From: Bigelowiella natans CCMP2755
Taxonomy: Eukaryota; Protista; Cercozoa
Assembly: GCA_000320545.1 (NCBI GenBank)
Contig: ADNK01002131.1
Location: 58,219-122,218 of the forward strand
Direction: 5' to 3'
Length of the DNA stretch: 64,000 nt
Numbering within the stretch: position 1 is the first letter of the stretch; every line of letters starts with the position of its first letter. The notes beneath the pieces were generated by a model that was not told the origin of the DNA, made no database searches, and worked only from the letters and a program-made list of their open reading frames with translations. Positions 1-19,399 of this stretch are shown piece by piece. A program made the translations under genes and the position numbers.

Positions 1-36
1 TGCTCCTTTCTTTCCTGCAATATCTACATTACTCAG

Positions 37-842
37 TGCTTGGAGGATATCGATGGTGGCGAACTGTTGAACGAACGCAAGCTTTCGGATGATGACATCA
101 AGAAGCTACGTGATTTGATACAGCCTCTCATGGCGAGTACGGATGAAAACAGGTAATATCAACGATCTAGTTTTGGCTGTGCTGTCCAATCCTACTTCCC
201 TCAAATTCAGCTCGATCTCCTCTTCTTCCCTCCTTCTGACTGTTGGTCCTCGTTTGATGATGATTTATTCTGGCCTTATTCATGCTGCTACTGCTCATGA
301 TGTTTTGATGTGCCGGTGGAAGCAGCTCCAGCGAATCCTCCTCGGACGACTCCTCTGATTCTGGAGTCCCACAGCGCATGAGCAACCCTGTTCCATCAGC
401 AAAGCAAAGAATCCCACAACCTTCATCGCCGTCGTCGTCGCCGTCGTCGTCATCGTCGTCGTCGTCATGTTCGTCATTGCCGTCGTCGCCGCCTCCTCAT
501 TTACATTCTTCGTCGAGCACGCAAAAGAGTATAAGCAAAGGAATAAACCCAAGCACAACGGTCAGCAATAGCCTCTCTCGTTCTCCTCCGTCCCATCCTC
601 CTCCATATCCAGAATTATCTCAACCGCTCCCTCTTCCAAAGGATGGCAAGAATAATTCCGCTGATGCTTCCCAGGTCACTATCAGGGGACTACATGAACT
701 GTACGAGAGAGATGCTAGTGGCACGAATAGCCACATTGGCTGCCTATCAACAACGGCAGATAGTACATATGACAACGAAGCAAGAGAGGAGACAAAAAAA
801 GAAGCCAATGACAAGAATGGTAACGAGTTAAGGGAAGAGTGA
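37..842 (+). CDS. 3' exons (37-152, 326-842) of an unidentified gene starting before the window
   Basis: AG acceptor at 35-36, exon CLEDIDGGELLNERKLSDDDIKKLRDLIQPLM, GT donor at 153. Phase-compatible acceptor at 324-325 leads into the Ser/Pro-rich frame that ends with TGA at 840-842. No family recognised. Confidence 0.4.
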
Positions 843-1875
843 GAAAATAATAATGTCAAACCGAATGCAACGATGGTGGCAGCGGTAACAGTGATGACAC
901 AAAGGGAAGACAAGGTAGAAGAGACGGCCGGGAACATGGCGAACAATGAACCTCACAAAATGTCCCCACTCGATAAAAGAGAAATGAATGAACATGAGGT
1001 CAATTTTAACCATAATCAACAGGAATGTCTAGATAGCACTTTCTCCTTTGTTTCACATTTTTCGCCCAGACAAGCTTCATCGAGATACATCATCATTGCT
1101 GGGTCATCATGTGCAACAGCGCAAATTGAATCATGTCACCAACATGTGAGCGATGCGCAGTACCATCTCCTGCGGAATGGCTTCAAAGCTGGACATGGCT
1201 TGGACATCAAAACATTTCGATCCTGTTTGCTCTTCCAGCAAATCTTGGTTCTTCAGCAAGTCTTGCTAGTTGGTTCGATCGATTCTTCACAAAAAACTTT
1301 CCATCCAGCTGAGCTGACACAATTTGGGTGCTCGTTTCAGGGCAACGGTTTGGTCTTTCCAGCACTGCAGCAAGTGTGGACTGTGGACACAGTGTGCATC
1401 ACATGTGTGTCATGTGCATCACACATGCGCATGTCTGTTGTCATGCACACCCTTCAAAGCATTCAAATGGGCGTCTCTGTGCTGCACGATTTGCTCCGCA
1501 TCACTCCCGTTGCATGGACATGGTCACGCAGAACTGTTCATCACAGAGCATGACACTTTCACATGTGACATTTGTCTGTGCATGGCTTCATGGTGTCACA
1601 TCAATGCCTCAGTCCAATGACACCCATCGCTTGCATTTCATGCACACTGAACGTGTGTGCTTGGCAAGGCCCTGCATGACCCTGCGTGGGCATGTGGTTG
1701 TTGCACATGCCATCAATGTCAGGCATGCATGTGTTCTTGAAGCATTTGACATCTGTGTTGTTGCTGTCAGCATCACCTAGTTGAAGCCGCATTGTCGCAC
1801 ACTGCTCCCTCTGTGCAAACAATGCCATTCCACTCACTCAGACTCCTCCACGGCCTCAAATCACATCGATTGCAC

Positions 1876-2115
1876 TGCCTCCCTTCACGAATTGTGTTCC
1901 TGCAGGCTCAACGATCGTGCTGCCTCCCTTCATGAATTGCATTCCTGCAGGCTTGTCGATTCTGCTGCCTCCCTTTGTTTCATCGTGAAGAGAACAGGGA
2001 GCTGTGATTGCAACAGAAGCCAGGAAGCATCGCAGAACTGCACCGGATGATTCATTGTGAAGAGAACAAGGAGCTGTGATTGCAACAGAAGCCAGGAAGC
2101 ACGAGGAAACTGCAC
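1876..2115. repeat. Tandem repeats: 45-bp unit x2 (1876-1965) and 72-bp unit x2 (1979-2115)
   Basis: tgcctcccttcaYgaattg..ttcctgcaggct.. at 1876 and 1921; ttcatYgtgaagagaaca..gagctgtgattgcaacagaagccaggaagca at 1979 and 2051. Confidence 0.9.
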
Positions 2116-2917
2116 CTGCAGTTGCATTGCGCAGCGCTGACAACACAACTGTGCAATTGTTGGAGGGCTGGGTGCGGTGCGATGTGCGCGCAGTGAGCAA
2201 AAGCTAGCAAACGAGCAGGTGGCGGTGTTCAGGTTGAACTGTGAGGTCATCATGCGAGGGTTGACCGCCCTCTGACAAGTGTCAAGCTTGTCATCAGTCA
2301 CATGCAATTGCATTGGGTTTCTGGGCCGCGACAAGGCTAGCAAGTTCAAGAACTTTGTGCAACTGAAGCCAATCAACGTGAGCGACTTGTTCAAACCCGA
2401 ACAAAAAAGGTTCATCAGTGGAACGTGCGAGTTCAAGGTCGATTCAAAGGCACGATTGAAGTGCAGTGACAAAAGAAACCGAGAGTGCAAATCTGACGGA
2501 AATGAAACTTGCAAATTGACGCGCATGTCCATTGGCTTCCCCTTGCTTCAGTGGGCGATCAAACAGTGCCATCTGCATTGTCACAGACATGTGATGCCAT
2601 GTGTGCACCACACGTGATGTTGCTGTGTCCATCACAAGTGCAAGCCCTTTTTTGGCCCCGAGCAACAGTCCTTCTTCACCTCACATGCCCCAAATGTGCC
2701 TTCTCCATGTCACAAGTTGTCATTTCTGTGTCTTTTGTTGTGCATGCAGCAACTGGCAGCGATGCGCAAATGCAATGCAAACTTGATGAAGCGCTTCATT
2801 TCAAACACCTTGCAAAAGACATGGCTTTTCATTTCAGCATTGTGTGTGCAGATTGCAAGCCTACGATGCATGCGCATTCTCAAAGGGACACTTGTTTCAT
2901 GCACACCGTGTCTCGCG

Positions 2918-3487
2918 TCATTTGAATTTCATGATGCAATGTGCACAGAGGTTGATGTCAAGCGTGATGAGGACAAATTGTTCAGAATTTGCATCTGCAC
3001 TTTCAGTTTGCCATCTGTCATCAAAAACTCTCCCAAGATCCATGGCCTTCTCTTTTGTCATGATTTCTTTTGTCGCAAAGAGACAAACCATGGTCTCATG
3101 TCCATTGTCCTCATCATCGTGTTCAAAACATGGTTCGCATGTCTTTTTTTTGAATCTCCGTGATTGAGCTTCAGATGAAGATTTGTGAGTCTGGGCATGA
3201 TGCAAATGCTTCTCGAGTTCATCAGGTAGCACATGCTTGATCTCTTCTTCTTTGGTGGTGTTTTCAGTTGATCCAGATCCTTTCAGCACAGGCCTCACCG
3301 GCGCTTGTGTACGAAGCCTTTTGCGACGGACCTCTTCTGCAAATTGGTCAATGGTTTTGTTCTCTTCCTCGTCCTCACTGTCACTGTCATCACTGCTCGC
3401 AAGGTCGATCACAGTTTTTTCTTCAATTTTCCACGGCGGGCAAACGTCTGGAACTTGGCAGGCTTTTCTTTTCCTGGACATTGGCAT
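2918..3487 (-). pseudogene. Tyr-free acidic/basic ORF relic inside block 1, family unknown
   Basis: 189-aa ORF with NLS-like (RKRK, RRKRLR) and acidic tracts, no Tyr, ending in TGA. It lies in TA-erased DNA, so its length may be inflated by lost stop codons. Confidence 0.3.
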
Positions 3488-3611
3488 GTTTTAGAGGTTG
3501 GTTGGGCAGGTGAGGGGTTTGAGTTGTGAGGACTTTGGTTGAAGAGGAAGTGAGGGGCCGAGCCTTGGATTTCAACAGAACAAACCACGTGGCCTTTGAC
3601 CAGTGTTCTCA

Positions 3612-3765
3612 ATGTGCCACGTGGTGGACCCCGGCAAAGCCATGTGGTGCACTCACCTGGACTTCTCAATGAGCCACGTGGCTGACCCAGGAAATGCCAT
3701 GTGGTACACTCACTTTGACTTCTCTGTGAGCCACGTGGCTGACCCAGGAAAAGCCATGTAGACAC
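3612..3765. repeat. 57-bp tandem repeat, about 3 units
   Basis: gccacgtggYKgacccMggMaaWgccatgtggtRcactcac repeated with period 57. Confidence 0.9.
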
Positions 3766-4469
3766 GTCAAAAATGAGCCCAATGCAAAGCCACGTGGCCT
3801 GCATCAGGAGCGACATTGGATGGAAGCACGCTGATGATTTCTTGACTACACTGAGTGACGCAGCGACGCGCGATTGATGCCAAACCATTGAATGTTGCGC
3901 CAAGACAATGCAGCGTCATTCAAAGCTGTGCTGCGCAGCGCTGCGCTGCAATGTGGCATGTGCTTGCCATGGGCATGAAGTGCAAAAGAAAATGAGCGTG
4001 ATGAACAGCACAACGTTTTGCGCAAACCCAACATTTTTCAGTCCATTTGTTTGCAAATTGTCAATTCGAACTCCCGTTACAGGCCATCCCGTCAACCCAG
4101 AGTCACCATCAACTTCGAGCATTTTTCTCAAACGAATCTGTCTCTTTGTTTGCAACTGTTCCCGCCGTTTTTTCTCTGCTGCGTCTTCTTGAGGGGGGGG
4201 AGGGAGGGGGGCATCCTCATCTTCCTCTTTTCCCTCCTTGTCTTCACCCCCTTCTTCCTCCTCATCATCCTCTTTTTCTTCCTCCATGTCTTGAGGGGGG
4301 GGAGGGAGGGGGGCCTCCTCATCATCCTCTTTTTCTGACAATGCAGAACATCCGTTTAATTAGCGGACACTTGTTATAGACACGTAATACCACATATGTA
4401 CTGTACATGATATTACTATGTCCATCATTGTATGCAACTTGACTCTTGTATTCATGTATCCCTTTTCCC

Positions 4470-4545
4470 CTTATGAATAATGAATAAAGCATTGTCCAAA
4501 TTTATATGGTGCCAGGCAGAAGAACATGGGAGACAGGGCAACAAA
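4470..4545. repeat. Diverged copy of the repeat module also at 7201 and 7361
   Basis: tgaataatgaataaagcattgtccaaattta...acatgggagacag matches aatgaataaagcattgatcaaat...acatgggagacag at 7218-7270. Confidence 0.75.
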
Positions 4546-5023
4546 TATAGCGCGTAGACTCGCTCGCATGGCGCATTGATACAACCAACAATGATGATGA
4601 GCATTGCGCTGCATCATTTTGCATGTATGTCTAAAATGCTTCTTATTTCAAATTGGAAAAGTTGCTACTACCTAGGAGACAAAACTATATAGGAGATTTA
4701 TAATACAAAAACATAAGCATGGTCGAGATGCCGCATGGTCCTGCACATATACACGTGTCGCCTTACACCATTCGTTTGGCTGTACAGCACGTAGTGGTGC
4801 GCTGGCCCCACTATCTGCCTAGCTTTTTTCTAATTTACTCTCACATTTAGCAGGTTCTGCCTCTCCTGTAAGGTGGCGCGCAAGGTAGTCGCATGTAATT
4901 TGTGCGAATTTTGCATTTTCTGTTTCATAGCGCATTTTCCCTCCAGGAAGTGCCCGGATGGCCCTGCCGTTCAGTGATTGAACCTTATCAGAAGTGCTCG
5001 TGATAAATTTACCCTCCCGAATT

Positions 5024-5057
<34 letters not shown>

Positions 5058-5263
5058 ATTTACAAAACTTTATAAAAAGAGAACCCCCAATCCCTCCAAA
5101 AGACCCCTATAAAACATAAGTATAATATAATGTAATATGATACAGCATAATGATATAGTCGCATAATGCTGTCGCATAGGCTTGCACACTATACCGCCAT
5201 TGGCGGTTATTATAAATTTATTATCATGCCTCACACATCACACATCGCAATGCAACTGCAATC

Positions 5264-7150
5264 TCATTTTTCCTTATTGTGGCCCCAAGCAACCATGGAT
5301 GATCGCATGGATGATCGCATGTCTGTCATCTCGGCACTAGATGCCAACGGCAAGCTTCCGGCACTAGATGCTGCGACCTCATGGACGGCGCCATGAATCC
5401 GCTTTCGTCGGGACGCTAGCCAAAACCAGAGTGCTAAGCAAGCAGCAGTGCCCACCAGGAGAGTGACAATGATGATGACTAGGCCGCTGCTATCGGCGCT
5501 TGCTCCTTTGGCTTCTTGCACATTATCATGCACTACAGCGACAGGAGAAGAAGGCGAAGTAGTGCCTGGATGAGCAGTAGGAGACCCTGTAGGAAGCAAT
5601 GTAGGCGCTAGTGACCTGGACGAAGGCGACGTGGTCGGTGAGGCTGTAGGGAGCGACGTGGTCGGTGATGCGGTGGTAGGGAGAGTCGGCGCAAGGGTGG
5701 CAGGCGAGACACTAGGATTTGCAGTCAATGGATGCGCTGTGGCTGGGTTCAGCGTAGGATTCAGTGTCGCGGGGCAGACTGTGGAGGGGGAAACCGTCGA
5801 TGGCGTCAGAGTCGGGTTTACTGTGGGATTGTTTGTCGGTGCTGCTGTTGTTTCCGGCCGCGTGGTGATGCCTAGCAAGGTCACGCCGTTCTGACTTGGA
5901 AGGCAGATGGCATCGGTTGCATTGACAGCGAAGCAGTCCGAAAACCAATATCTATTAGCTTGGTAATATGCCCAGGGAATCGTAATTATCCCCGTGGAGT
6001 TCCTTACGGTATCGATGTACATGGCCTCATAGGCAGGTTGATAGTTTGGCGAGCAAACAATGGTCGTGTTTAGAGCGACACATCCAAAATTGGGAGGAGA
6101 AGGTTGCCTCCCAAAATAGTGCCGATTGGTAAAGCCACCAGCTAGAAAGGACACTGCGTAGCTTGAATCTATTCTCAATACCACGTGTTGGTAAGAACTT
6201 CTTGGAGGACACCACATCGTGTTGCCCACAGTCACACAGGCTAGAAAACACGAACCTCGAGCCAGAGTGCCAAATTGGCCTATAAAAGAGTACGAGGTGG
6301 ACGTCATTGACATTCGAATAATACGGGGCCACCTATTAATGCTGTAGGTGCATGGCGCACAGACCAGGTCCGAAGACAAAATCCCACACCCTTGATAATA
6401 TTCGGAATGATACAGGTCGGTTGTGTAGCCATTCTCTATAGCAGTGCTTGGTATTTGGGTCTGCGTGTCGAAGTTGAGGAACGTATATGAAGGAATCCCC
6501 CCTCCCATTCTATTCTGGTCAATAGGCGCGCACTTGATGTATCGTCCGCCCATGTATGCACAATGACCAAAGTCGCCACCGCTAGCGTATGTGCTCCCAA
6601 CAAATTGGTGCCCATGACTTGTTACCTTCAGAACTTGGTTTCCCCCTGTTGCAGTGATGCAGTAAACAGGATCCAAAACTGAGTCGCCGGTTGGCACGCA
6701 GTGCCCAGCATAGTCCTTGTGTAACGTGCCAGTGCCATGTGTGGACACGACGCTCGCTCCGACTGAGACTTTGAAGATCCGTACTGGGTTCTGGTACGAT
6801 GAGTATTGGCCGAAGAAATACAAGACTCCCGCACGGACGAAGACCATTGGCATCCCTTTTTTTAAGATGCCAACGGCGGGTTGGAGGAAAGTCGCGGTCG
6901 TGTTTGTATCCTCTGCGTTCCGCACAAATCTGACGATGAGGATCTCCTGTAGACTCACCTTATGGAAGCAGTAGGTGACGCCGTTCGGGCCCGTGCTAAC
7001 CGAGTAGCAGTCTCCATCAATCATACCAGTACCCACAAAAATCGTTGAGTTGCCCATCGCGGCGTATGCATGAGGCGGGAGGTTCGTTGCAGTAGCATTA
7101 ATCAGTTGAATGACAAAGAGAGAGACGCCTAGAGCCCAAACCATCGGCAT
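5264..7150 (-). CDS. Intronless type I membrane protein (about 628 aa): signal peptide, Cys-containing propeller-like repeats, Thr/Pro/Ser stalk, TM helix, short tail
   Basis: Likely start MPMVWALGVSLFVIQLINATA at 7150. About six repeats of the form (F/Y)xxC..x..C(P)...vlxiD, e.g. FLACVTVGNTMWCPPRSSYQHVVLRID. Stalk of PTxxP repeats; TM GLVIIIVTLLVGTAACLALWFWLA followed by SRRKR; TGA at 5264. Confidence 0.85.
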   Translation of the reverse strand: MPMVWALGVSLFVIQLINATATNLPPHAYAAMGNSTIFVGTGMIDGDCYSVSTGPNGVTYCFHKVSLQEILIVRFVRNAEDTNTTATFLQPAVGILKKGMPMVFVRAGVLYFFGQYSSYQNPVRIFKVSVGASVVSTHGTGTLHKDYAGHCVPTGDSVLDPVYCITATGGNQVLKVTSHGHQFVGSTYASGGDFGHCAYMGGRYIKCAPIDQNRMGGGIPSYTFLNFDTQTQIPSTAIENGYTTDLYHSEYYQGCGILSSDLVCAPCTYSINRWPRIIRMSMTSTSYSFIGQFGTLARGSCFLACVTVGNTMWCPPRSSYQHVVLRIDSSYAVSFLAGGFTNRHYFGRQPSPPNFGCVALNTTIVCSPNYQPAYEAMYIDTVRNSTGIITIPWAYYQANRYWFSDCFAVNATDAICLPSQNGVTLLGITTRPETTAAPTNNPTVNPTLTPSTVSPSTVCPATLNPTLNPATAHPLTANPSVSPATLAPTLPTTASPTTSLPTASPTTSPSSRSLAPTLLPTGSPTAHPGTTSPSSPVAVVHDNVQEAKGASADSSGLVIIIVTLLVGTAACLALWFWLASRRKRIHGAVHEVAASSAGSLPLASSAEMTDMRSSMRSSMVAWGHNKEK

Positions 7151-7200
7151 AATATATATTGAATAATCGGCAACGTCCCAATTCTTCTTGCGTCTGAACA

Positions 7201-7515
7201 AACAATGAATAATGAACAATGAATAAAGCATTGATCAAATCTACATGGGCCAGAACCACATGGGAGACAGGCGTATACATGCAGCAGCGCCTCAACAAAA
7301 ATTATTGCGAGGACTTGTCAGCACCCTCTTGGTGATGAGTAGTAAAACAACTAAAGAATAGTGAACAATGAATAATGAATAATGAATGATGAACAAAGCA
7401 TTGATCAAATTTACATGTGCGAGAACCACATGGGAGACAAGCGTATACATGTAACAGAGCCTCAACAACAGTCGTTGCAAGGACTTGTCAGCACCCTGTT
7501 GGTGATGAGTTGCAC
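7201..7515. repeat. Two tandem copies (period about 170 bp) of a module directly upstream of the membrane-protein gene
   Basis: aatgaa..aaagcattgatcaaat.tacatg.gc.agaaccacatgggagaca.gcgtatacatg...gcctcaaca...ggacttgtcagcaccct.ttggtgatgagt at about 7201-7330 and 7370-7510. Confidence 0.9.
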
Positions 7516-8176
7516 AACTAGCAAGAAACGATGCTAGTTTTTGCTGTCGCATTCTGTAGAACAAGGAGAATTTAGGTAGGACGACAACCCAATCTGGGGA
7601 TGATGTCTAAGAAACAACACATGCATGTGTGTAGTTCCTAATGTAGTTCCCAATGCACATGGTTTCGTTCTTAATGTAGTTGGATGCGGGGTGGGCGAAA
7701 CTGCCGAATGTGAACAGCATCAAGATGCTAGTTTTTGCTGTCGCATTCTGCAGAATGAGGAGAATTTAGGTGGAGATCTTGGACCAACAAATTTGACAAC
7801 AAAAGACAATTCTTTCAAAGCGACATTGAAAAAAATGCATGATTTCACGATGTTGGCTCAAAATGGCCCTTGCTTCCATTGAAAGTACCAATTTCACACA
7901 CTGTTTGTCGCAACTAAAGATTTCCATGTGTCAAAAGCAATTTCATGTGAAACAGTTTGGTTTCAATTCACATGAATGGAAATGGTTGGTTTTTGATTCA
8001 CATGAATGCAAGAAGTTTTGCTTCTCATGGACAGATTTGCAGCGAGCGAGTCTCTCGAGTTGCACCCTGTCAAGAGTAGCTCCTCCCCCTCCCTTCCCCC
8101 CCCGCCTTCCGCCTACCTCTGTCACTATCCCTGCGAACCCACACTCTTGGTTGCTAGACTTCCCTGTCGGTGCGTG

Positions 8177-10496
8177 ATGTCTCATGCTGACCCTGACGAA
8201 ACAGTTGTGGCCTCACCGGAGTCGCACGAGTTGGGACATTCCGGACCTGCCGAACTCTCAACCGTCACCTCCCAAGAGTCAGGAACCCCCGGACTTCGCA
8301 AACACTTCGATCTCAACGATGCACCTGGACCTCTAGCCGCCCTCCACCTCAGGGAAGGTGTTGACGATGCCCCTCCTGATGTTTCGACACGCATGATTTC
8401 ATCGTGGACCGATGACATTTCAGCTGGCCAGGTCATCGGTTTGCATCACGGAACACAATGGTGCGTGGGGAAAGTCATGTCAGTCAACCAGGATGCGGGG
8501 AATGCGGAATTTGACTGGGCCGATTGCAGGTCATCCTCGGATCACACGGGCGTGAGTGACTGTGGTGACAGTCCTGCTTTTGAACATCTTCCGATGTCCT
8601 CAGCTGTTGATGGCGGTGAAGACAAAGCCAAGATTGCTTTCCACTCGCCCCGGGGGAAATCTGCATGGGATGGCATTCCCATGGCCACACGAGAAGATCC
8701 TGGAGGTCTGAAACGAAAAATTTCAGAGCAAATCAGGCCACTGATGACAACTCGCACCGCAGAACCAGAAAGGAAGTTGGCGACCCCAACTGCTGCAAGT
8801 GTCGCCTCGGCTGAAACCATTCTTCGGAGCAACTGGATTCTCAGCAACGCGCTCACCGACCATCCCAACTCTGGAGAGGGCAACGAGGTGGACACCGAAA
8901 TTGCAGATGCAATCAAGGGTGAAATTCGTGATGTCGACAGTGCTTCACCCAGCCTTCACAAACTGCACGCCCGGAGGCCTCACATCGAGAGAATGTTGAA
9001 AGCCTTGCACCTCCCACACTGCATGAGCCCCACCGGTGAGGCCAAGGATGACTCAGAAACGCCAATGGAAGCAAACTCCGCCCCTTCCAGGTGCCCAGTT
9101 GCCATGGACTCAAAGGAATTCATGGGGATGGAGTCAGAAAGGCGATGGCTACGCATGTTGGATTGTGTCTCAGCGGTTTGTGAAAAAAATGCACGGCTCA
9201 CTGAAGCGCTAGCATCAATGAAGGCCAAGATCAACAGCCAAGCGGAGGAAATTGAAGTGTCACAGCAAGATTGCACCCGCAGGAGAAACCACCGGAGACT
9301 TGGGGAAGCTCCTCCTTCGGTTGCTGCCCCCTCCTCAGAGATTCCACTCATTTCCAAGCTGAACAATGGCAAGGGGAGATTCCGCCCCATGCGTGCCAAC
9401 CCTCCAGGGAATGGAGACTGCTTGAAAGTGATCCTCATGCTTGGGAAACAAGCCCTCACCGAGAGAGCTGATGGTCACATCGCCTGGAATCAGGAGGGGG
9501 GACTTCTGCGATGAGCTGCAGCAGGAACTTCTCAAATGGTGCGAGGAGTCGAGCGAAGAGGTGAAAGAAACGGTGGAATGCACGGAGCATCAAACCTTCA
9601 AAGCTTGGGCACAGTGCTTGGTTGAACTGCGCCAACACTTTGGGGACAGTGAGATCCTGCTCTTCTCAAAAATTGCCAACATTGAGTGCATGGTGATGAC
9701 AAAAACGGGCGCGCGTGCACGTGCACACCGAGGGGACAGGCCGTGCGCACGCCTGTGCTTCTTCTGCGAAACAAATGCCGACGGCGAAGGGAAGATCACG
9801 GGCCACCACCAACCACTCTTTGTCAAACGTGGCCGCTCGGCTGAACTTCTGTTCAACCCGAAAGACCCTCAACTTGAGCTGGTGGAGCAGGCAGCACAGC
9901 CAAAATCTGAGGACCAGCTCTCAGATGAGTTCTGTGCAGCAGACAAAGATGCACGGAGGATCATCCGGGGTCGTCTCTCACAAATCAGGAAGAACCCAGG
10001 TGTTGCACCTCAATGCATGCCCCCCTTCCCTCAGAAAGAGACAGAAGGTTCCTCAAAGGCTGGTCACAATTCAAGCCCGAAGAAGAAGAAGAAAAAAACG
10101 AAGAAGATGACGAAGCAGCATTGGTCCCACAGCCCCCCGCACGCTGCGCACGCTGCTTCTGCTCACATCCGCTCAGAACCTGCCATGGCACGTGCAATGA
10201 CCGTCCCTTCTTCATCAGTCCGCAGGGCGCTCGTCATCTTCACCAACGGCACTGCAGCACAAACTGAGAAGAAACTCGATGAAAGTGTTCCAGCGCTGTC
10301 CAAACACATTGCGACCTTCACTCGAATGAAGAACAAACTGAACGATGGCCACCGCATCATCGTTGTGGCCAATGACGATGCTGGATTGCGGGCGCTTCAT
10401 GACAGTGTCTCGGAGATCGCCAACATGGGGATGAAAGTTGCCAAGTGGCTCCCCGTGGGGAAGCGTCACGGCGGGGGGTCCTGCAACAAAGAGTGA
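8177..10496 (+). pseudogene. ORF1-like relic of a non-LTR retrotransposon with an OTU-like cysteine protease domain; frameshift near the G-run at about 9496-9501
   Basis: PPGNGDCL (OTU Cys loop) at the end of ORF 8006-9514 continues in the next frame with FGDSEILLFSK (WGGxxEL-like) and ITGHHQPL (GHY-like His motif). The C-terminal RALVIFTNG...GHRIIVVAN segment may be RRM-like (inference). Confidence 0.6.
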
Positions 10497-10552
10497 CGGT
10501 GAAGAAACGGCGTGGGAGGCGGGCCATTCTTTCCCTCCTTCGCCAACCACGC

Positions 10553-11338
10553 ATGCACCCCAACCCCTTTTTCAAAGTTGCATGGTGGAACGTCAGAGGC
10601 CTCAATGGCAAAGTGGCTCTTTCTCACAAACTCACTTTGGACGAGAAATTGGATGTTCTTTTTTTGGTGGACACCCAATTCCCTTTGAACAAAACAGCAG
10701 CACCAAAAACCCACCAATGGACCCCATTCCCCACTGCCTTTTCCGGCCCGCACGACTCCAAGCGCGGGATGGGAATGCTCCACAAATCAAAAGCCTCCAT
10801 TGTCCAGGCAGGCCTTCACGATGTCTGGATTGCAGCAGAGGCATCAACACCGATCCTCCTGCATGCTGCTCACTGGCCATGTGCGGGAGACCCTCTGCAC
10901 GACCAAGCACGCAACGAATTCACGGTTTCGGCTCGCGCCGTGATGCCCCACCACAAGTCAGTTCTGTCGGCAGGAGATTTCAACGCTCGTCTCTCCTCCG
11001 ACAGGGACACAACAACCAATCCCCAGGGTTCCAAGGTGCTGGAGGCTGCCTCTGCCCTGGGCCTTCTTCACTGGGATGTGGACCTCAATGTTTTGTGCGG
11101 CCCGTGCTCCAGAGAAGTGGAACTTGAATCGCCGACTGGCACCATCATGCAGCGGTCCACGCCAGATCACGGCTTCTGCAACGAAGCTGCTGCACTCATC
11201 ACATCAGACACCCACGTTTCCCCACACAACTGCCTCAGCGACCACCGCCCCTTGGTGGCTTCCCCAGCTGTGACAGCCTCCCCCAACCTCCATCTCGTTT
11301 CGGGGTCGTGGGACAACACCATCAAAATTTGGCGATGA
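10553..11338 (+). mobile_element. 5' part of LINE-like ORF2: apurinic-type endonuclease (EEP/APE) domain, truncated before any RT domain
   Basis: Canonical APE motifs in order: WNVRGLN, LDVLFLVDT, AAHWP (YxP), AGDFNAR, STPDH (DY), SDHRPL. Directly follows ORF1 as in LINEs. Confidence 0.85.
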
Positions 11339-11858
11339 ATGAATGGGTGGTGTCTTGAGCAGCTGATGCAAGTGGTGAGATGGTGAAAGGAAATGGCAGG
11401 AGGGTGGAGAGGACGGAACGGGATCAGAAGGAAGATGAAAGGAGGAACGGAACAAAGTGCATGGGTGTCGTCATGCAGTGCCATGCAGTTTGGAGATGAG
11501 ATTCGTTGGTCAGCGTCACCTAGCTTGCCAACTAGTTTGGACCGACGAACTGCTTTGATGGGGTCCACCCGCGCGCATGAGGATGGTTGGGGTCAGGGGG
11601 AAAGGGAAAATTCAATCAACAACACTTTGAATCAGAGTCCTCCATCCAACGTTCCTGGAATCACTTGAGAAATGATGGGGACATGGATGGATGGGATGCG
11701 AATTGCCAGCAGCAACAATGACTTTGAGAGTCGCTCTGCGTCACCACAGCTGTTGGTTTCCATCCTGCGTGTGCGTCCACGTGTCGTGCATGCATGTGGT
11801 CATTTCACTGACTTGCAGACAGCACGCAGCGCACGTTCCGCACAATGCAAGCCGCGCA

Positions 11859-12375
11859 GGAATTCCTTGACGGTCAAAGCGGTGCACACGTGTGTTGTTG
11901 ACATGTGCAAAATCTTCGAGATCTCTGAGAGGTTTTGACTTGGATGATGGTGACATCTGACACACGTGTGCCGTTTTGACGGTCAAAGCGGTGTTTTTGA
12001 AAAATTTCAAGATTTTCGATGGCAAGTCTTCTGATGGGAGAAAAAAATGAAGTGCAAAGTGCAAGGTGCAAGGTGCATGTGTGAGAACTGTGTGCATCAT
12101 CATTTTTTTTCAAACGTGAAGTGTGAAAACATGTGCACAATGCAAACATGCATGTGCATGTGTGCACCTTGCACCTTGCACTTTGCACTTCATTTTTTTC
12201 TCCCATCAGAAGACTTGCCCTCGAAAATCTTGAAAACTTTCAAAAACACTGCTTTGACCGTCAAAACGGTGCATGCATGTCAGATGTCACCATCATCCAA
12301 GTCAAAACCTCTCAGAGATCTCGAAGATTTTGCACGTGTCACACGTGTGCATCGCTTTGATCGTCAAGGAATTCC
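11859..12375. mobile_element. Fold-back MITE-like element with about 215-bp terminal inverted repeats and internal direct repeats
   Basis: ggaattccttgacg at 11859 is the reverse complement of cgtcaaggaattcc ending at 12375. Arms are highly similar over about 215 bp. ttgacggtcaaagcggtg occurs twice per arm. Flanked by ca on both sides. Confidence 0.85.
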
Positions 12376-14809
12376 CACGCGAACACGATCCACTTTCCTT
12401 GAACTGGAGATGTGGGGAACATGGAGGATCATTGTGCAAATTGTTCGGATTTCATTGAGTCCAAAGGCTGACGTGGAGGAACATCAGAATGTTTCGACAT
12501 CTTGATCCCGACCACCCGGCGACCAAAAACACGTTGACATTGCACGTTCACAGAGAATGCAATGTCAGAATGATTCAATGATGCCTCATCAAAGAGTGTC
12601 AGTGAGCATCGAGTAGCTGTTGGCTTTGTTTGCATGAAAATGACGGCTGGTAGAAAGTGCGTGCCATTGCGGACAACTGCAATCATTGCGTCGTGTGCGC
12701 CAGAACACGTTTGCGTCATTGTTTGGCTGGATTTGGGGAAATGTGGGATGATTGTTTGCATGGTGAATGACAGAGCAATCCTGACTGTGTGACTGTGGAC
12801 ACAGTGCATGTCATGCACGTGTCATGCACATCACACGTGCGCATGTCCATTGTGTGGCTGACCGTCACCACCTTCGAATTCATGGTGATCGTCGAATTGT
12901 TTCCAAATCATGGTGCCCAAGCAGAATTCTGTTCAATGTCAGAGTCTCTTTCTTGCTGGGACAGCAAGTGATCGATTTCCTCACCACATTGCATCCGACA
13001 CAGTCTGACAACTTCTCCTGATGAGCAGCACGTGGCACACCAATTGGGAGCCGCCCATCACCGCATCATGATTTCTGTCGATGACATGCTTCCGCCCAAA
13101 TCATGGCACATCTAGACATGCTTCTTGGTGGTTCTGGCTTCAACTTTGCGGCCAATTTGAACCCAATCACGATCATTCAATGTTTGAAACAATGCACTCA
13201 TTCTGGGGATGGGAGTTGTGAATTCAATTCATTCAATGGGATGCATCGGAACACTGCTAGACTGGTGACTGCAAAATTTTTCTGGGCTGCATGGAGACAA
13301 GCTAGCAAGTTGCGACGATTTCAGGGGCTGCTGTCTTCTGTTGCAATTGCTTCCCACCACCAATGAGACTCAGAGTGCTTCTTCTCAGAAGCAATCGCAA
13401 CGTCATGAGGAAAGATGCTTTGCAAGATGTGCCACGAAAACCACAACGAAAAACTGGAAGTTCAAGTGCAAGCACGGGAACAATTGGCGTCAGTGTTCCA
13501 AGAAATATCATCGAGTTTGAGGCAAGAAACGAAGCCAAATTGTGGACAGAAAGTCCAATTCAAGAGTCACCGCTGCATCCAAGATTCCAAACAGAAGGAA
13601 ATGGGGGAGAAGACAAGACGACACGCAAATTGTTTCTTTCAATTTGGACCTCCGCAACGATGGCCATTGCGGCCATTTTCAACTTTGGGCATCTAGCACA
13701 CTTCCAATTCCAGGATCCAGACCGATCTCATGCAGACCAAGCTGGCAAGCCCAGTTTCGACAATCGCGAGGAGAGCACCAAGCTAGCAAGGAAGCCCAGA
13801 ACGTTTTGCCAATGTTGTTTCTCTTTTGGGTGCTGTCTCAGCTGGCGGTGCCTGCATGACCTTGTGCACAACACCGGCTTCAAATGCAGCACGCGCATTC
13901 ATGCTCAATCAATGTTGTTGCTGCTGCAATTTTCAAAACACTCCACTAGCTAGCTAGCTTCATCGAAGAACTTGATTTTGGAGAAAGACAAACAGTGCGG
14001 TCATTCAGTTGTCATTTGACATGAATCAGCTCAAAAGCAAGTTTCCAAAGCTAGAAAGGCAAGAACTGAAAAAGACCAAAGCATGATTGCCAGATTGGCC
14101 AACGTCAAAATTGTCAAAATTGCAAAAGGGTGCCTCCAGACCTTGCTCCTCACTGCTAGCTAGCTAGACTGTGGCGCTACTAGGCTAGCATGTGACACCA
14201 TTGTTGCAATTGCAGTGCTTGCGTTTGCCAGTTTGGTGTGTAGTCTCTCGCTTGCTGCAATGAGAAATCTCCATTTTTGTTCATTTGACAATTGATTTTT
14301 CAAATGAAAATGTCTAGACTAGATCTGCTGTTTGTCAATCATCCAAAAGTGTGTTTCGCGTTCAATTTGGAAATCATCACATGCAACAGCTAGATCTAGA
14401 GATGTAGCGAAAAGGTTAGACTCACATTGCACACGCACCCAGCTAGCCAGCGAAACAAACGCGAGCGACAATGCTAGATTGCAAACTGAAAATGACACAA
14501 AATTTATCAATTGGTACCAAATTAATTGTGCTTGATTGGAAGTATCTCAAACAAATTCGAGTAGCTGCCCTCGCGTGCACAAGTTCCACATTTCGTACGC
14601 GACACGTGTGATTAACTCATGCTAAACTAGTAATATTTGATTCAGAGTGTTGCTGAATTGCTGCAAATATCATCTCTAAATGTAAAAGTAAGCACAATGA
14701 GCGTTTTGGATGTAATACTTCCCAGGTTTTACGGATTTCAGTGAACTATTTGAAAAATCTATACCACCGATCACAGTACCAGAGTACCACCAATGTTTCT
14801 CATAGAAGA

Positions 14810-17125
14810 TCATACATCGCTTTCCCATCCATCATCATCATCATCATCATCATCGTCATCATCATTTTCGGCCTGCATTGTTTTTCCCACTCCATGTTTT
14901 GATTCCTTTGTTTTTTTTCCCCCTTGGAGAGGCGAAGTCTCTTTTGTTTCTTGAAAAGGTAAATTGATTGAAATAGAATCAGATTTATTACTCTCTTTAT
15001 GGGGTATACTGAACATTGCAGCTCGATGCCTGTATGCAAAATACATTGATGGACTTTTACAAAATGATGAGCGACGAAAACTACCTTTTCAGTTTTTCTC
15101 GCAACATATCCATTAAGCTTCCACCTCCTGAAGCTGGAGAGGAATGTGACTGTTTTCCTTTATTCTTTGATTTTCTTGGTTTTGCTTTCTTCAGCTTCTT
15201 TCCTTTCCTTATATCTTCAAGTAAACTTGATCGTCCATCTCCAATTCCAAGAGTTGGACTAGGTTCCAGCTTATTGGTGTTTCCAGAGTCTTCATGGTCT
15301 ATTATCTCTGCTTCAGGTTTTTTAATCTGCTTTGGTGACTCTGAGATAGCTCGTGGGAAGTTTTGCTCAGGTAAAAAATCATGTTTTTCTATTTCTTCTT
15401 TGTTACTAACTGGTATGTTTTGAATTTTTGGTGAAGGATCTGCAGCACTTTCAATTAGGTTGATATTGGAAGGAGTGGATGGAAGAAGCTTTATCTCCGG
15501 AAGAGTAGTTTGATCGACGATTTCTGGCATTGTTGTCATATTTCTTGGTGCAAGGACTATCTGATGAACTTTAAATTTTGTTTCCAGAGAAATATCCTCG
15601 AGACTAAGATTTGAAGGTGCTATCGACAATCCAATGTGATTGCTATTTCTATGCACACAATAAAATTAATTCAAATTACTATTCATCACAAGAATTACAA
15701 GATTTTACAGTGTAATATCTTCGGCAACATTGGGAAGATTTAAGCTTGGCAAGTCGATTGTAGGTAGATCTAACAAGGTACAAATGTGAATAACAAACAA
15801 AACTCTCCTAATTTAATTTTTGCGGCGTACCCTCTTCATTCAATGTCGGCATAAAACCAAGTTGCTTTAATCCTCCCTCAAATTTCAATTCAAAATCCTC
15901 GCCGAAGGTACTCGGAGCATCCTTTCAGAGGAAAATTTCAAAATGTTCCATCTAAATGCATATGTGACATTATACCGCGAGAGGATTCTCGTCCTCCAAA
16001 TCCTAAATTATTAAGTAATGTTTATCTGAATCAATATTTCGGTAAATATCGTAAAATGTAACCCTAGTCTTCTCCTTTTTGAGAAGCGAAGAGAGCAGAT
16101 TATCGAATGTGGCGTAATTTTGATATGGATTTTCATCAGAATTGAAAAGCAACATTGAATCCACAGAAGACAAATTCGCAGGAAGCCTTCCCAGCCCTTG
16201 ACTAGTTGCGTTTCCATCTTGGTATACTTTTCGCTTGATGAGTTTTTCGCTCATTCGATCATCGACAAACTTATAATCACAAATGGGTCTCAGAGTATGT
16301 TAGCTAGCTGACTTGGAAAAAATTCAGGTGCTTACATTTTGTTCCACGCGTTCAACCAGATTTAGGAAAAGGGCGGTTGTAGTGGCTCGCACAGCAGGAG
16401 TGAGCATTGACATGGGGAGGTCAAGACCATATTGTCTGCTAGACAATTTCTTTTCAGTTTCTTTACGGAAAATTAAATTCAAAAATGGAATACTTCCTTC
16501 CCAAGTCAGGCGATGTTCGCTTCCCAACGAACATACAAGGATAGTCACTGTAAGTCATTTAAGAGAAAAGATTAAGTTGCAAATCAACCAATCGCAAGTC
16601 AAGAAACAAAGCTTATTCACCATATTTTCTCTGTACTTGGATATTTTGAATAAGAGAATACTGTTGTTGCTTTCTTGGCACCTCTCTCGGAAATAAATCT
16701 TATCTGATTGGATGCATAGTTAAAAACGACTAAAATTACAAAAATATATTCCTAAACCTTCTCCTCACATGGCCCTATTCTTGAACACATGTTATCAATT
16801 TGACCACGACAGAATTTAATTCTTGTAGAAATCCTTGCAAAGGCATCATCTATGATTTCCTCCAAATTTGATAGTGCATCTAGGGCCTTGAATTATGAAT
16901 GTAAATGCTGGTCAATGAAATTCCGATTCATTAAAAAATTCATTCACTTAATTGAACACCTCAGTTATTGACGCTGCTGTTGGGAGATTGTGATCTATTG
17001 GAACTAAAGACAATTCAGTCATAAGTTCTTCGAAGCGTTAAATAGTTAACAGTACCATGGATGTTATACATCCTCTCAGCGAAAAGCGGCACTTCGCTGC
17101 TGCTCCCCCTCCTGCTCTCCTCCAT
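14810..17125 (-). CDS. WASH1: WASH complex subunit 1 (multi-exon; 5' end approximate)
   Basis: WAHD motifs DALSNLEEIIDDAFARISTRI (about 16760-16900) and GLGRLPANLSSVDSMLLFNSDENPYQNY (about 16100-16200). WH2 SLLEDIRKGKKLKKA, central GGSLMDMLREKLK, acidic tail DDDDGWESDV ending TGA at 14810. Confidence 0.85.
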
Positions 17126-17289
17126 GTTCTCCTTCTTCTTCTTCTCCTTCGTAGTGTGGTCCAAGGACCGCGCAGTTTGGAAGAAATGAACAATGAACAA
17201 TGAACAATGAACAATGAAATGATATCAGGGCAAAAAGAACAACAAATCGCCTGCAAAATACTTGAGTAAAGCGGTGCTGCTACTTCCGC

Positions 17290-18670
17290 TTCAGGGTAAC
17301 TTGGGTTGTCGTAGAGGGTAAATACAAGTGTTACTTCCAAAGAAATTGAGGGATCCTTCTCCCGCAACTAATTTCCTTTTTGGAATGTCGCACAAAGCAT
17401 TCCCCACCGGTGAGTCTTGTTTGTCAGCAAGATGTCGCACAAAACGATTCTCCGCTTGTTTGTTGTGCTGCTTCCATTTGCCAACGGATACGAGCATAGG
17501 CGCAAGACCGTTTGAAGGATTTATAGGAAAGAGTGTCTTGCAGTTATTAGGTACGACACAATAAATTGTCACAATCTGGAATGGAATTGGCATTTGGACA
17601 AAATTACACATCCTCAACGATCCTTTCTTTTACACACAACTCGAAACTATCTGCCTGCACTGATGCCACGACGAATTATCAAACGAACTGATCGACGAAA
17701 TCGTCCATCGAATGCGCCCTGGGACCGGCCAGCTACTCCTCCGAGAGGAAAGGTGACGGTCGCCATTTCATCACTTACATGTCCAGCAGTTGGATCATTA
17801 TGAGCTGCTATCTCAGGCGCATCTGAAGAAGGGTTCAAAAGTAGTTACACCTCCATGGAAAGTCCGATCAGTTTCCACTATTCCGACGAGAAGAATCAAG
17901 AATGATCACCCCTCTAGTCCACCGTGGGCTACTGACCTTCATTTATCTTCTTCACGTCTTGTCCCTTTAAACAAAACATTTGGGTATTGCCATCTATCTC
18001 CATTTTTCTAGACCGTCTTCTTGATGGATAGAACATCTCATCTTATCAGGGGACGAAGAGGAAGCTGCATGACTAAATTTTCGACAAATAATGTACAATC
18101 TATAGGGATAATGTACCTTTTTTAGGGAATAAACAATCTTCTGTTGATGTGACGAATTGCAATTTTGGATTTTAGAATCAGCCAAGATCTCCTTTGGTAG
18201 TCCTGGGAAGCAAACTAAATCAAAGGAAAAAGATGTACTCTACCACGGTTGATTTGAAAGTTTACATAGCATAAATTCGCATAATAGTACACTAAAATTG
18301 TCTGTGACCTCATTTTTTAGACTGGAAAGTCCAACTCCAACTTTCTTTCTTCACGACCAGTAACAATTTTAAGATCTGGAAGACAGATATTCTTATTAAA
18401 TTAGTGATTTTGCATATTGCAGATATACGATGATGTATTACCAAGTCGCAAGAAAATAGTTTTGCTGCAGAATATTGTGAGTCTTGCTGTAGTAAAATTT
18501 CACGCCTATCTAATATATTTATATTTTTCTTCAAACTAGCACAAAGGTGAAGAAATAGTTCACAAACCTGGAAAGAAAATTGTCCCGGAAATGAAGTGCA
18601 GCAAACCATCTGTTCCACGTGCACAAGGAAAAAAAAAGGTTTTGTATAATGTGTAGCACCTTTCAAGCTT
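17290..18670 (-). CDS. Possible multi-exon gene of unknown function
   Basis: Several minus-strand open frames with plausible composition (17291-17617, 17647-17838, 18310-18666). No motif recognised and structure not resolved. Confidence 0.25.
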
Positions 18671-19399
18671 TCGCAACCTCCTTGAATCCCTTCAGTATCA
18701 TTATTAGTATCCTATTGTAACTTTTGCTGGATCATTTCTTTGATTTAAATATTAAAAAGATCCCTACTCCAAAGTCAAGCTCTATGCAACAATGGTCACA
18801 AAAAAACAATCGAATTATAAACTGGAGACCTCTGAATGTTAGGTATGAAAGAATTTTCCATAAAATGATTCAACATTATGTGAATACATGCTAATTTACA
18901 GACGTCGTAGAGAACTACAAGCTATTTCAAAACAAACGGTTAGTATTTTTGAGTAATGACATCCCATTTATTTGTCATTTTAGAACAAATACCATTTATA
19001 GGTTGACGTTCGCAAACAGAATAGAGAAAACATTGGTCCACTAACAAAAGTTGTGGGAGCAAGAACTCAAAAGATAGTTACTTCAAGCAAAAAGTGCACC
19101 TACTACAGTAGTCGGAACATTAGCAATGTGACGTTTGGCTAAACAATTAGCATGCAGCTTCAGAATTTTGATGTATTCTCATCATGTCGTCATTGGACGC
19201 AAAACGTGCAGATTTGTTACATTTTGCAAATTTAAAGTATTGAACGAACAATCGTAAAGTAAAACCAAACCTGACACCTCATTTCATGCGGATCGATCAT
19301 TTGCATCTTTAAATTCCATCTAAAAACCTTGACATCGGGCCTGGGATTGATGAGATAGATTACATGCAAACATCGATCAAGTGTGATGCATGTATTGCT

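Follow-up and report, generated by a model that had tools for sequence, protein, structure and literature searches.

Two TpA-erased blocks flanking an expressed gene in Bigelowiella natans: the long-term footprint of an already reported hypermutation

The window considered here, that is, the whole stretch of 64,000 nucleotides of Bigelowiella natans CCMP2755 that was analysed, contains two blocks from which the dinucleotide TA (TpA) has been erased almost completely. The observation itself is confirmed, and it corresponds to the long-term footprint of a hypermutation that has already been reported; it is real, not new. The sequence-only reading of this DNA had named no described system with such a signature, but a 2026 preprint (Mettrop et al., bioRxiv 10.64898/2026.01.13.699255; not peer reviewed) reports the process in the same species. 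We consider it very probable that the blocks represent old nuclear DNA of mobile or foreign origin, probably silenced, which this published TpA-specific hypermutation has saturated. What the analysis adds to the preprint is modest, namely, a flanking-context rule, a spared expressed gene, and a transcript from Norrisiella sphaerica.

The extent of the loss was measured as the dinucleotide observed/expected (o/e) ratio, with a window background for TA of 0.76 in all background-based expectations. In block 1 (1268 to 4356, unstranded), 11 TA remain against about 149 expected (P = 3e-49), with o/e values of 0.06 for TA, 1.61 for TG, 1.84 for CA, and 0.57 for CG. Block 2 (7780 to 13950, unstranded) has a core at 8335 to 13112 with 6 TA, compared with 265 expected from base composition and 203 at background o/e (Poisson P = 1e-77), so that the near-absence of TA claimed earlier for 7780 to 14500 is borne out by the counts. 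The longest TA-free run (9211 to 11520, unstranded) covers 2,310 bp, for which composition predicts 113 TA and the background 86 (P = 4e-38), in keeping with the roughly one hundred first estimated. Within the blocks, the TA o/e is 0.02 to 0.06, GC is 0.49 to 0.53 versus about 0.46 overall, and TG and CA are as abundant as had been noticed, with o/e values of about 1.5 to 1.84 versus a background of 1.13 to 1.15, and a rise of approximately 1.5- to 2-fold. CG had been described as retained, and it is still present, but it is mildly depleted (o/e 0.57 to 0.70 versus 0.86). The borders, which had been called sharp, are instead transitions over about 100 to 400 bp, some of them graded; at the right edge of block 2, the return to normal TA is gradual and complete by about 14400. 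Reading frames of 354 and 311 amino acids have no Tyr, as first noted for such frames, and every stop is necessarily TGA because no TA is present. Block 1 is absent from the listing of the sequence-only reading.

The direction of the change can be read from a mass balance, in which the missing TA (138 in block 1 and 197 in the core of block 2) and the missing CG (54 in each) together approximate the excess of TG plus CA (222 and 235, respectively). It follows that the loss of TA exceeds that of CG by about 3 to 4 to 1, contrary to the dominance of CG-to-TG/CA changes that the sequence-only reading had named as grounds for its refutation, and that the loss of CG covers only about one-quarter of the TG plus CA gain. 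On one strand, the gains of TG and CA are equal (331 versus 329 and 441 versus 472).

Repeat copies provide a second record of the substitutions. The erased copy of a 58-nucleotide repeat at 2578 to 2635 (plus strand) has a partner at 4371 to 4428, which starts 15 bp beyond block 1 and has kept its TA; all 22 differences between the two are transitions at YR steps, and 11 TA sites of the outside copy read TG or CA in the erased one. A dispersed repeat of 63 nucleotides at 12791 to 12853 (plus strand) is shared with block 1 (1379 to 1441), and its 14 differences are likewise all transitions, 6 of them TG/CA swaps, which by themselves are ambiguous, as the ancestor may have been TA or CG. Given the shortness of both pairs and their high content of alternating YR, the P values overstate how secure the homology is. 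In a palindrome of 529 bp (11853 to 12381, unstranded; arms 11853 to 12083 and 12157 to 12381), the 185-nucleotide arm core shows 14 differences, of which 12 are transitions, 11 of these at YR steps and including 4 TG/CA swaps. Block 1 also carries tandem repeats of 45, 72, and 57 bp, and no recognizable protein domain was found in it.

Judged by homology, block 2 includes a 3'-truncated LINE, composed of an ORF1 homologue and an APE endonuclease. The degraded ORF1 homologue (8633 to 10478, plus strand) aligns by tblastn (E = 1e-16 and 5e-11) to residues 15 to 286 and 549 to 632 of the 643-residue ORF1 of an intact relative, L001, and it is followed by an APE-type endonuclease domain (10502 to 11330, plus strand) with the motifs WNVRGL, GDFN, and SDH. 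The element breaks off after this domain, and the window yielded no reverse transcriptase; a single WD40-repeat-like fragment (11219 to 11383, plus strand), TA-free, forms an in-frame fusion after the truncated endonuclease. At 10871 to 10873, the codon is CAC (His), where all seven intact relatives have Tyr; the same position is occupied by His in the related copy P0128 and by Cys in P0129, both of which are Tyr-free. Of the description of the block as filled with transposable elements, the LINE fragment at about 8600 to 11330 stands, but the remainder is unannotated, repeat-bearing DNA. Of the erased DNA, 9 kb in all, some 2.7 kb is demonstrably transposon, and the other 6 kb or so has no recognizable domain; apart from the LINE, the two blocks would consist of dispersed and tandem repeats of unassigned origin, which are assumed to be foreign or silenced.

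The intact relative bears on the question of whether any TpA-directed process needs to be invoked. Horizontally acquired or compositionally odd elements could have been TA poor by ancestry, with CpG methylation and deamination doing the rest, and the lowered CG of the blocks does indicate that some CpG decay is real. However, this leaves most of the TG plus CA gain unexplained, and L001 has a normal TA content (o/e 0.63) with 29 Tyr in its ORF2. Moreover, three erased copies have His or Cys in place of the conserved Tyr, and the repeat copy just outside block 1 retains its TAs; we know of no TA-free donor. TA-poor ancestry is therefore highly improbable. Two familiar signatures were rejected as well: 5-methylcytosine deamination does not account for erased TA with CG only mildly low, and the TpA excess, CpA/TpG loss, and GC drop of fungal RIP are the opposite of what is seen in this rhizarian alga. 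Thus, mass balance, repeat copies, the Tyr codon, the intact LINE, and published de novo mutations all uphold the reading that the substitutions turned TA, rather than CG, into TG or CA, that either strand could be hit, and that the changes are confined to tracts of probably mobile or foreign DNA.

Those de novo mutations come from mutation-accumulation lines of B. natans sequenced by Illumina, in which TpA-to-TpG/CpA changes arise; in two viral hypermutable regions, 230 of the 231 single-nucleotide mutations are A to G or T to C and are reported to fall on TpA, within delimited domains and at a rate that exceeds the genomic background about a thousandfold (10.64898/2026.01.13.699255). The same authors mapped 124 TpA-poor clusters, enriched in reverse transcriptase, endonuclease-reverse transcriptase, and DDE Pfam domains. 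The window shares with their footprint the species, the dinucleotide, the products on both strands, the kilobase-scale TpA-poor clusters with a gain of CpA plus TpG, and the reverse transcriptase/endonuclease domain context; different from it, their direct evidence concerns an NCLDV insert and a virophage insert that still bear many TAs, whereas at the present locus, in LINE and repeat DNA, the process has reached saturation and hardly any susceptible TA is left. When their formula was reimplemented as a symmetrized rho, 1001 to 4000 and 11001 to 14000 passed the cluster thresholds; in 8001 to 11000, the rho of TpA was 0 to 0.10 and that of CA plus TG 1.34 to 1.41, so that the dual threshold would miss the part that is most nearly free of TA.

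In the light of these data, it is extremely improbable that the pattern is an artefact of how the reference genome was sequenced or assembled. The erasure is limited to domains, has graded borders, spares specific contexts, and leaves frames and homology recognizable; Tyr-free relatives occur in independent transcriptome assemblies (P0128, from MMETSP, and L003), and the Illumina mutation-accumulation data show the same type of mutation arising.

The spared contexts follow a rule. Among the 30 residual TAs, 25 lie in an S-TA-S context (P = 9e-13) and 14 in CTAG (P = 2e-10). The fitted product of rate and time by 3' base was 3.0 for T, 2.8 to 3.0 for A, 1.1 to 1.4 for C, and 0.36 to 0.38 for G, with the ancestral TA contexts expected from the window background and one LINE relative in place of the true ancestor. 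Strong protection comes from a G on the 3' side of the mutated A and partial protection from a C, and the protection by 3' G makes CTAG the main survivor. This rule agrees with the raw mutation table of the preprint: a hand tally of Table S2 of Mettrop et al. (10.64898/2026.01.13.699255) by 3' base gave T 67, A 67, C 52, and G 20 (chi-square P = 5e-5, with TAN site availability in the NCLDV region approximated from the 64-kb window). The preprint itself offers no flanking-context analysis, and the words "CTAG" and "context" are absent from its text; neither does it discuss domain edges in relation to transcription units, or other chlorarachniophytes. In one LINE transcript of Norrisiella sphaerica, TA is erased too, and it survives in YTAR at 39 of 41 sites. 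It is possible to hypothesize, tentatively and with somewhat less than even confidence, that TpA is erased by an enzyme that reads the sequence and that its rule for the 3' neighbour has come to differ between the two sister genera: in Bigelowiella, TAT and TAA would be fully open to attack, with a susceptibility of about 0.4-fold for TAC and about 0.12-fold for TAG, and in Norrisiella, only TAY would be attacked and TAR would be immune.

The limits of erasure coincide with the edges of an expressed host gene. The un-erased interval between the blocks (4357 to 7779, minus strand; TA o/e 0.5 to 1.07) corresponds to a single host transcription unit, which is expressed and lacks introns, with a coding sequence at 5264 to 7231 for a product of 655 amino acids in which no Pfam domain was found. 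Positions 4696 to 7706 are matched, with three substitutions, by a transcript contig (L013) of a B. natans MMETSP sample, and a Bigelowiella cluster of MMETSP transcripts matches the Rpt3 ORF at 100% identity; these matches assign the window to the nuclear genome of B. natans. The flanking gene and a (TA)n tract had been described as untouched; both are spared, but the (TA)16 tract (5026 to 5059) lies in the 3' untranslated region and not in an intron. The 170/194-bp tandem repeats at 7195 to 7775 keep TA, as does the block-repeat copy at 4371 to 4428, and the hypermutable NCLDV insert is single copy (10.64898/2026.01.13.699255), which speaks against the earlier claim of a RIP-like restriction to repeats. 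With un-erased repeats beside the blocks and a single-copy published target, duplication is apparently not the trigger; targeting looks domain or silencing based rather than duplication based, and we infer recruitment by chromatin state or small RNAs, not by sequence duplication.

As for the chemistry, the most likely route would be that a TadA/ADAT2-like deaminase converts the adenine of 5'-TA-3' sites in DNA to hypoxanthine, each TpA becoming TpG or CpA according to the strand hit; U33-A34 is the natural context of TadA/ADAT enzymes. Since TpA is self-complementary, the sequence alone cannot tell whether A or T is attacked, and the same domain-targeted erasure could start from thymine, for example, by TET/JBP-like oxidation to 5hmU or 5fU with mispairing with G or misrepair, giving T to C. 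Oxidized thymines can mispair with G, and the results from the window and the preprint fit T to C equally well. An attack on thymine is nevertheless rather unlikely, as the organism has no reported thymine-modifying enzyme or modified base, the 5'-U preference of TadA/ADAT-type enzymes naturally fits TpA, and the candidate enzyme of the preprint is an ADAT2-like adenine deaminase with residues linked to DNA editing (10.64898/2026.01.13.699255).

Adenine deamination could also have taken place on RNA, through ADAR-like or TAD-like A-to-I hyperediting of retroelement transcripts fixed by reverse transcription and reinsertion. ADAR favors a 3' G, opposite to the 3'-G protection found here. Editing of sense RNA would give TG without CA on the element strand, but here, both rise equally, and non-retroelement DNA, tandem repeats, and the palindrome are erased as well, with graded edges. 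The partial LINE identity of block 2 and the 5' U favored by RNA adenosine deaminases (10.64898/2026.01.13.699255) would suit such editing, but the de novo mutations arose in place, in integrated viral DNA present as a single copy, and an RNA origin is very unlikely. The sense-strand-only A-to-G pattern of ADAR-type editing fixed by retrotransposition is absent.

Returning to the deamination of DNA, the strand symmetry of the products indicates a DNA target, different from the ADAR and TadA/ADAT enzymes, which share the A-to-G outcome and the 5' T/U preference but act mostly on RNA; ADAT2 DNA editing has been reported in amphioxus and trypanosomes (cited in 10.64898/2026.01.13.699255). RIP resembles the process in that it, too, inactivates mobile DNA through a heritable transition hypermutation confined to domains and specific for one dinucleotide, but it changes C to T at CpA in duplicated DNA, creating TpA and lowering GC, whereas here, TpA is destroyed and GC goes up. 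APOBEC/AID enzymes similarly defend by mutating invading nucleic acid to death, but through C-to-T and G-to-A rather than A:T-to-G:C changes.

In the literature searched, heritable A:T-to-G:C hypermutation at one dinucleotide of invading DNA appears only in the 2026 preprint on B. natans. The present locus shows the saturated end-state of TpA hypermutation in transposon DNA, and the expressed gene spared between two erased tracts offers a natural boundary case. The 3'-G/CTAG rule is a requirement that any candidate deaminase must reproduce. For annotation, we caution that, with TGA as the only stop and Tyr absent, erased tracts yield long spurious open reading frames and hide true homology. 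If domains do end at the edges of expressed genes, targeting would be by chromatin or RNA state, not by duplication. The Norrisiella sphaerica transcript hints at the system in a second genus with a different flank rule, which, if true, would make it a genome defence that is conserved in chlorarachniophytes and evolves fast in its specificity.

The depletion of TA is real and extreme. A sliding dinucleotide count, together with the list of TA positions, delimits two tracts nearly devoid of TA, namely block 1 (1268 to 4356) and block 2 (about 7780 to 13950, with its core at 8335 to 13112), in which TA-free runs extend over 2310 bp (9211 to 11520), 1081 bp, and 816 bp; the block edges are transitions of 100 to 400 bp, some of which are graded. 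With the rest of the window as background (TA observed/expected ratio [o/e], 0.76), block 1 holds 11 TA against 149 expected (Poisson P = 3e-49), and the block 2 core holds 6 against 203 (Poisson P = 1e-77). The o/e of TG and CA rises to 1.5 to 1.8 in the blocks, compared to 1.13 to 1.15 in the background, and that of CG drops mildly, to 0.57 to 0.70 from 0.86. In block 1 and the block 2 core, respectively, 138 and 197 TA are missing, and the TG+CA surplus amounts to 222 and 235; since this surplus roughly equals the TA and CG deficits combined, TA loss accounts for about three-quarters of the TG/CA gain. CpG decay is contradicted as the source of that gain, because the CG loss is 54 per block; thus, CG to TG/CA change does not dominate, and its dominance was the outcome that the sequence-only reading had named as speaking against its proposal. 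The TA to TG/CA signature and the mutation deduced from it in that reading were correct, and both have been reported for the same genome (Mettrop et al., bioRxiv 10.64898/2026.01.13.699255). Furthermore, the gains of TG and CA on one strand are equal (331 versus 329 and 441 versus 472), from which it follows that the mutations fell on both DNA strands.

When 30 reading frames of the two blocks were scanned against Pfam, a sub-threshold Exo_endo_phos match and a WD40 match were the only ones returned, and most frames had no Pfam match; since TGA is the only stop in the blocks, reading-frame length is an artefact. A full HMMER search with the frame at 10403 to 11335 against 1.84 billion representatives found LINE endonuclease relatives. 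One relative, P0130, is encoded on the 5.7-kb contig L001 (positions 1 to 5698, from Logan SRR29340314, with the near-identical L002 from SRR29340323), which carries a 643-aa ORF1 and an 1118-aa ORF2 with a reverse transcriptase domain (RVT_1) and 29 Tyr residues; L001 is apparently an intact LINE and, of the intact relatives, the one nearest to the erased element. With the L001 ORF1 and ORF2 proteins as tblastn queries, the window yielded a LINE ORF1 homologue (8633 to 10478) and a LINE APE endonuclease domain (10502 to 11330) with no reverse transcriptase downstream, so that the element in the window is 3'-truncated. A single WD40-repeat-like fragment (11219 to 11383) lies in frame, directly after the truncated endonuclease and inside the erased tract; a WD40-annotated gene (protein 75972) occurs in one conspicuous TpA-poor cluster of the preprint's supplement and may be this locus. 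Block 2 also contains a near-perfect palindrome of 529 bp (11853 to 12381), possibly a foldback or hairpin-forming element, and block 1 contains tandem repeats of 45, 72, and 57 bp. The bias between TG and CA relative to the LINE sense strand reached P = 0.03 in one sub-block; it is weak, composition confounds it, and we base no claim on it.

The alignment of the endonuclease records the change at the level of codons. The seven intact relatives share a Tyr that is replaced by His (CAC) in the window, by His in P0128, the closest Tyr-free copy (65% identity), and by Cys in P0129, a second relative; in four further columns where at least two of these seven have Tyr, the window has CAC or TGC. 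Neither P0128 nor P0129 contains any Tyr, compared to 1 to 4% in the intact relatives. An ancestrally TA-free element, another outcome that had been named as adverse, is contradicted by L001, whose TA o/e of 0.63 is normal and indicates that elements of this type do not inherently lack TA. When the endonuclease ORF and P0129 were used as queries in word-indexed protein searches, only the queries themselves were returned, and a pattern search of metagenome contigs gave 293 matches with no true relative, in a collection evidently lacking the MMETSP re-assemblies. Repeat pairs within the window point in the same direction as the alignment. In the purine/pyrimidine alphabet, positions 2578 to 2635, inside block 1, match 4371 to 4428, 15 bp outside it, exactly over 58 nt; the 22 differences between them are without exception transitions at YR steps (Y, pyrimidine; R, purine), and in 11 cases a TA of the outside copy corresponds to TG or CA in the inside copy. 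A 63-nt repeat common to the two blocks (1379 to 1441 and 12791 to 12853) shows 14 differences, all transitions, with six TG/CA swaps, and the palindrome arm cores, 92% identical, differ by 12 transitions, 11 of them at YR steps, and 2 transversions. These short pairs, rich in alternating YR, support TA to TG/CA change but would not be sufficient alone. A BLAST of the window in the purine/pyrimidine alphabet was dominated by microsatellite-like matches and gave no pairs beyond those of the exact-word scan.

TA erasure in B. natans is already known from the 2026 preprint, the only description of TpA hypermutation in the literature searched; the sequence-only reading, which knew of no described genome-defence system with this signature, is superseded on that point. 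[quoted passage not shown] When the preprint's thresholds were applied to the window, 1001 to 4000 and 11001 to 14000 qualified as clusters. However, 8001 to 11000, the most TA-free stretch (rho TA, 0 to 0.10), fails the CA+TG cut-off of 1.52 with a rho of 1.34 to 1.41, so that the count of 124 clusters probably under-calls GC-rich coding transposon sequence. The hints found for placing the window on the cluster list (a scaffold_50 cluster at 1,000 to 19,000, the listed low-TpA gene fgenesh1_pg.50_#_1, a GGA context displaced by one base at 4201, and a WD40 gene reportedly on scaffold_38) are mutually inconsistent, and no mapping is claimed.

The TAs that survive in the blocks reveal a dependence on the flanking bases. 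Among the 30 residual TAs, 14 are CTAG, 9 GTAG or CTAC, and 2 GTAC, so that 25 have G or C on both sides (S-TA-S), compared to 21% in the background (P = 9e-13; P = 2e-10 for CTAG alone). Moderately TA-poor, GC-rich genes elsewhere in the window, such as that at 40485 to 42047, are not enriched in CTAG or S-TA-S and resemble normal coding sequence. A simple two-strand survival model, fitted by the 3' neighbour of the mutated A, gave rate-by-time values of 3.0 for T, 2.8 to 3.0 for A, 1.1 to 1.4 for C, and 0.36 to 0.38 for G, and it predicts the observed survival (CTAG, about 49%; GTAG/CTAC, 15%; GTAC, 9%; elsewhere, 6% or less). The text of the preprint makes no mention of flank context, but its Table S2 gives the trinucleotide around each mutation (bioRxiv 10.64898/2026.01.13.699255). 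When we sorted its 206 scaffold-10 TpA events by hand according to their 3' neighbour (T, 67; A, 67; C, 52; G, 20), G was significantly under-represented (P = 5e-5), with availability taken roughly, from this window and not from the viral region. On the same scaffold, there are 3 A-to-G events at TAG but 17 of the strand complement, T-to-C at CTA, and the remaining context pairs, three in number, are balanced (34/33, 32/35, and 22/30); this imbalance may come from coding-strand site availability or from a real strand effect. Four T-to-C events on scaffold_10 are given in ATG or ATT contexts, which are not TpA.

TpA has been converted to TpG or CpA in place, symmetrically on the two strands, in a context-dependent manner, and within delimited domains. 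Editing of RNA followed by retrotransposition is contradicted as the origin of this pattern, as is an artefact of assembly. The adenine would be deaminated in DNA by a TadA/ADAT2-like enzyme, and the ADAT2-like protein Bn78255 has been proposed as the candidate DNA adenine deaminase (bioRxiv 10.64898/2026.01.13.699255). Since TpA is its own complement, the sequence would fit a chemistry directed at thymine instead of adenine as well, which we consider unlikely.

As regards targeting by the putative adenine deamination, the un-erased interval between the blocks (4357 to 7779) corresponds to one expressed transcription unit. The 2999-nt transcript contig L013, from one of the JGI samples with Bigelowiella Rpt3, maps without introns to 4696 to 7706 on the minus strand, differing by three substitutions and a length change in (TA)n; at one of the substitutions, position 5071, the window has TA and the transcript TG. 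The expressed 655-aa gene has a (TA)16-17 microsatellite in its 3' UTR (5026 to 5059); in the transcript contig, this tract is reduced by 12 bp. The Rpt3 (proteasome) ORF of the window (47614 to 48861) shares 100% identity with an MMETSP transcript cluster to which Bigelowiella longifila belongs, 96% with Chlorarachnion, and 94% with Amorphochlora. The Rpt3 and L013 matches identify the window as nuclear DNA of B. natans or of a strain very near to it. Scaffolds from environmental metagenomes, at most 19.8 kb long (L014 to L020; ENA ERZ23491473 and ERZ23491500; Logan ERR4674720, ERR4674723, ERR13954267, and ERR13954268; NCBI GCA_977009605.1), whose Rpt3 clusters with the Bigelowiella protein at at least 90% identity, are from wild relatives of Bigelowiella. 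The restriction to repeats that had been read from the sequence was not borne out, as the adjoining tandem repeats at 7195 to 7775 and the repeat copy at 4371 to 4428 keep their TA and the viral target of the preprint is single copy. Together with the expressed interval, these observations argue against a duplication-sensing, RIP-like trigger, and we infer that the target domain is defined by silencing state rather than by duplication.

P0129 is encoded on L003 (1 to 2851), a LINE-like contig from JGI sample 3300017173, a re-assembly of MMETSP0113, which also yields an Rpt3 annotated as Norrisiella sphaerica MMETSP0113. The TA o/e of L003 is 0.20 (0.08 to 0.15 within the ORF), those of TG and CA are 1.35 and 1.44, and the encoded protein of 366 aa has no Tyr. 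Here, 39 of the 41 TAs lie in YTAR (TTAA, 23; TTAG/CTAA, 14; CTAG, 2), compared to 18% in a host transcript of the same sample (P = 2e-21), whereas the Bigelowiella blocks contain no TTAA against about 25 expected. Since TTAA is erased in Bigelowiella and survives in L003, each of the two genera has its own flank rule. It is possible to hypothesize, as a lead provided by this single transcriptome contig, that erasure may also operate in a second chlorarachniophyte genus with another flank rule. The residual value of the locus lies in the context rule, in the expressed gene as a boundary case, and in this lead from Norrisiella.
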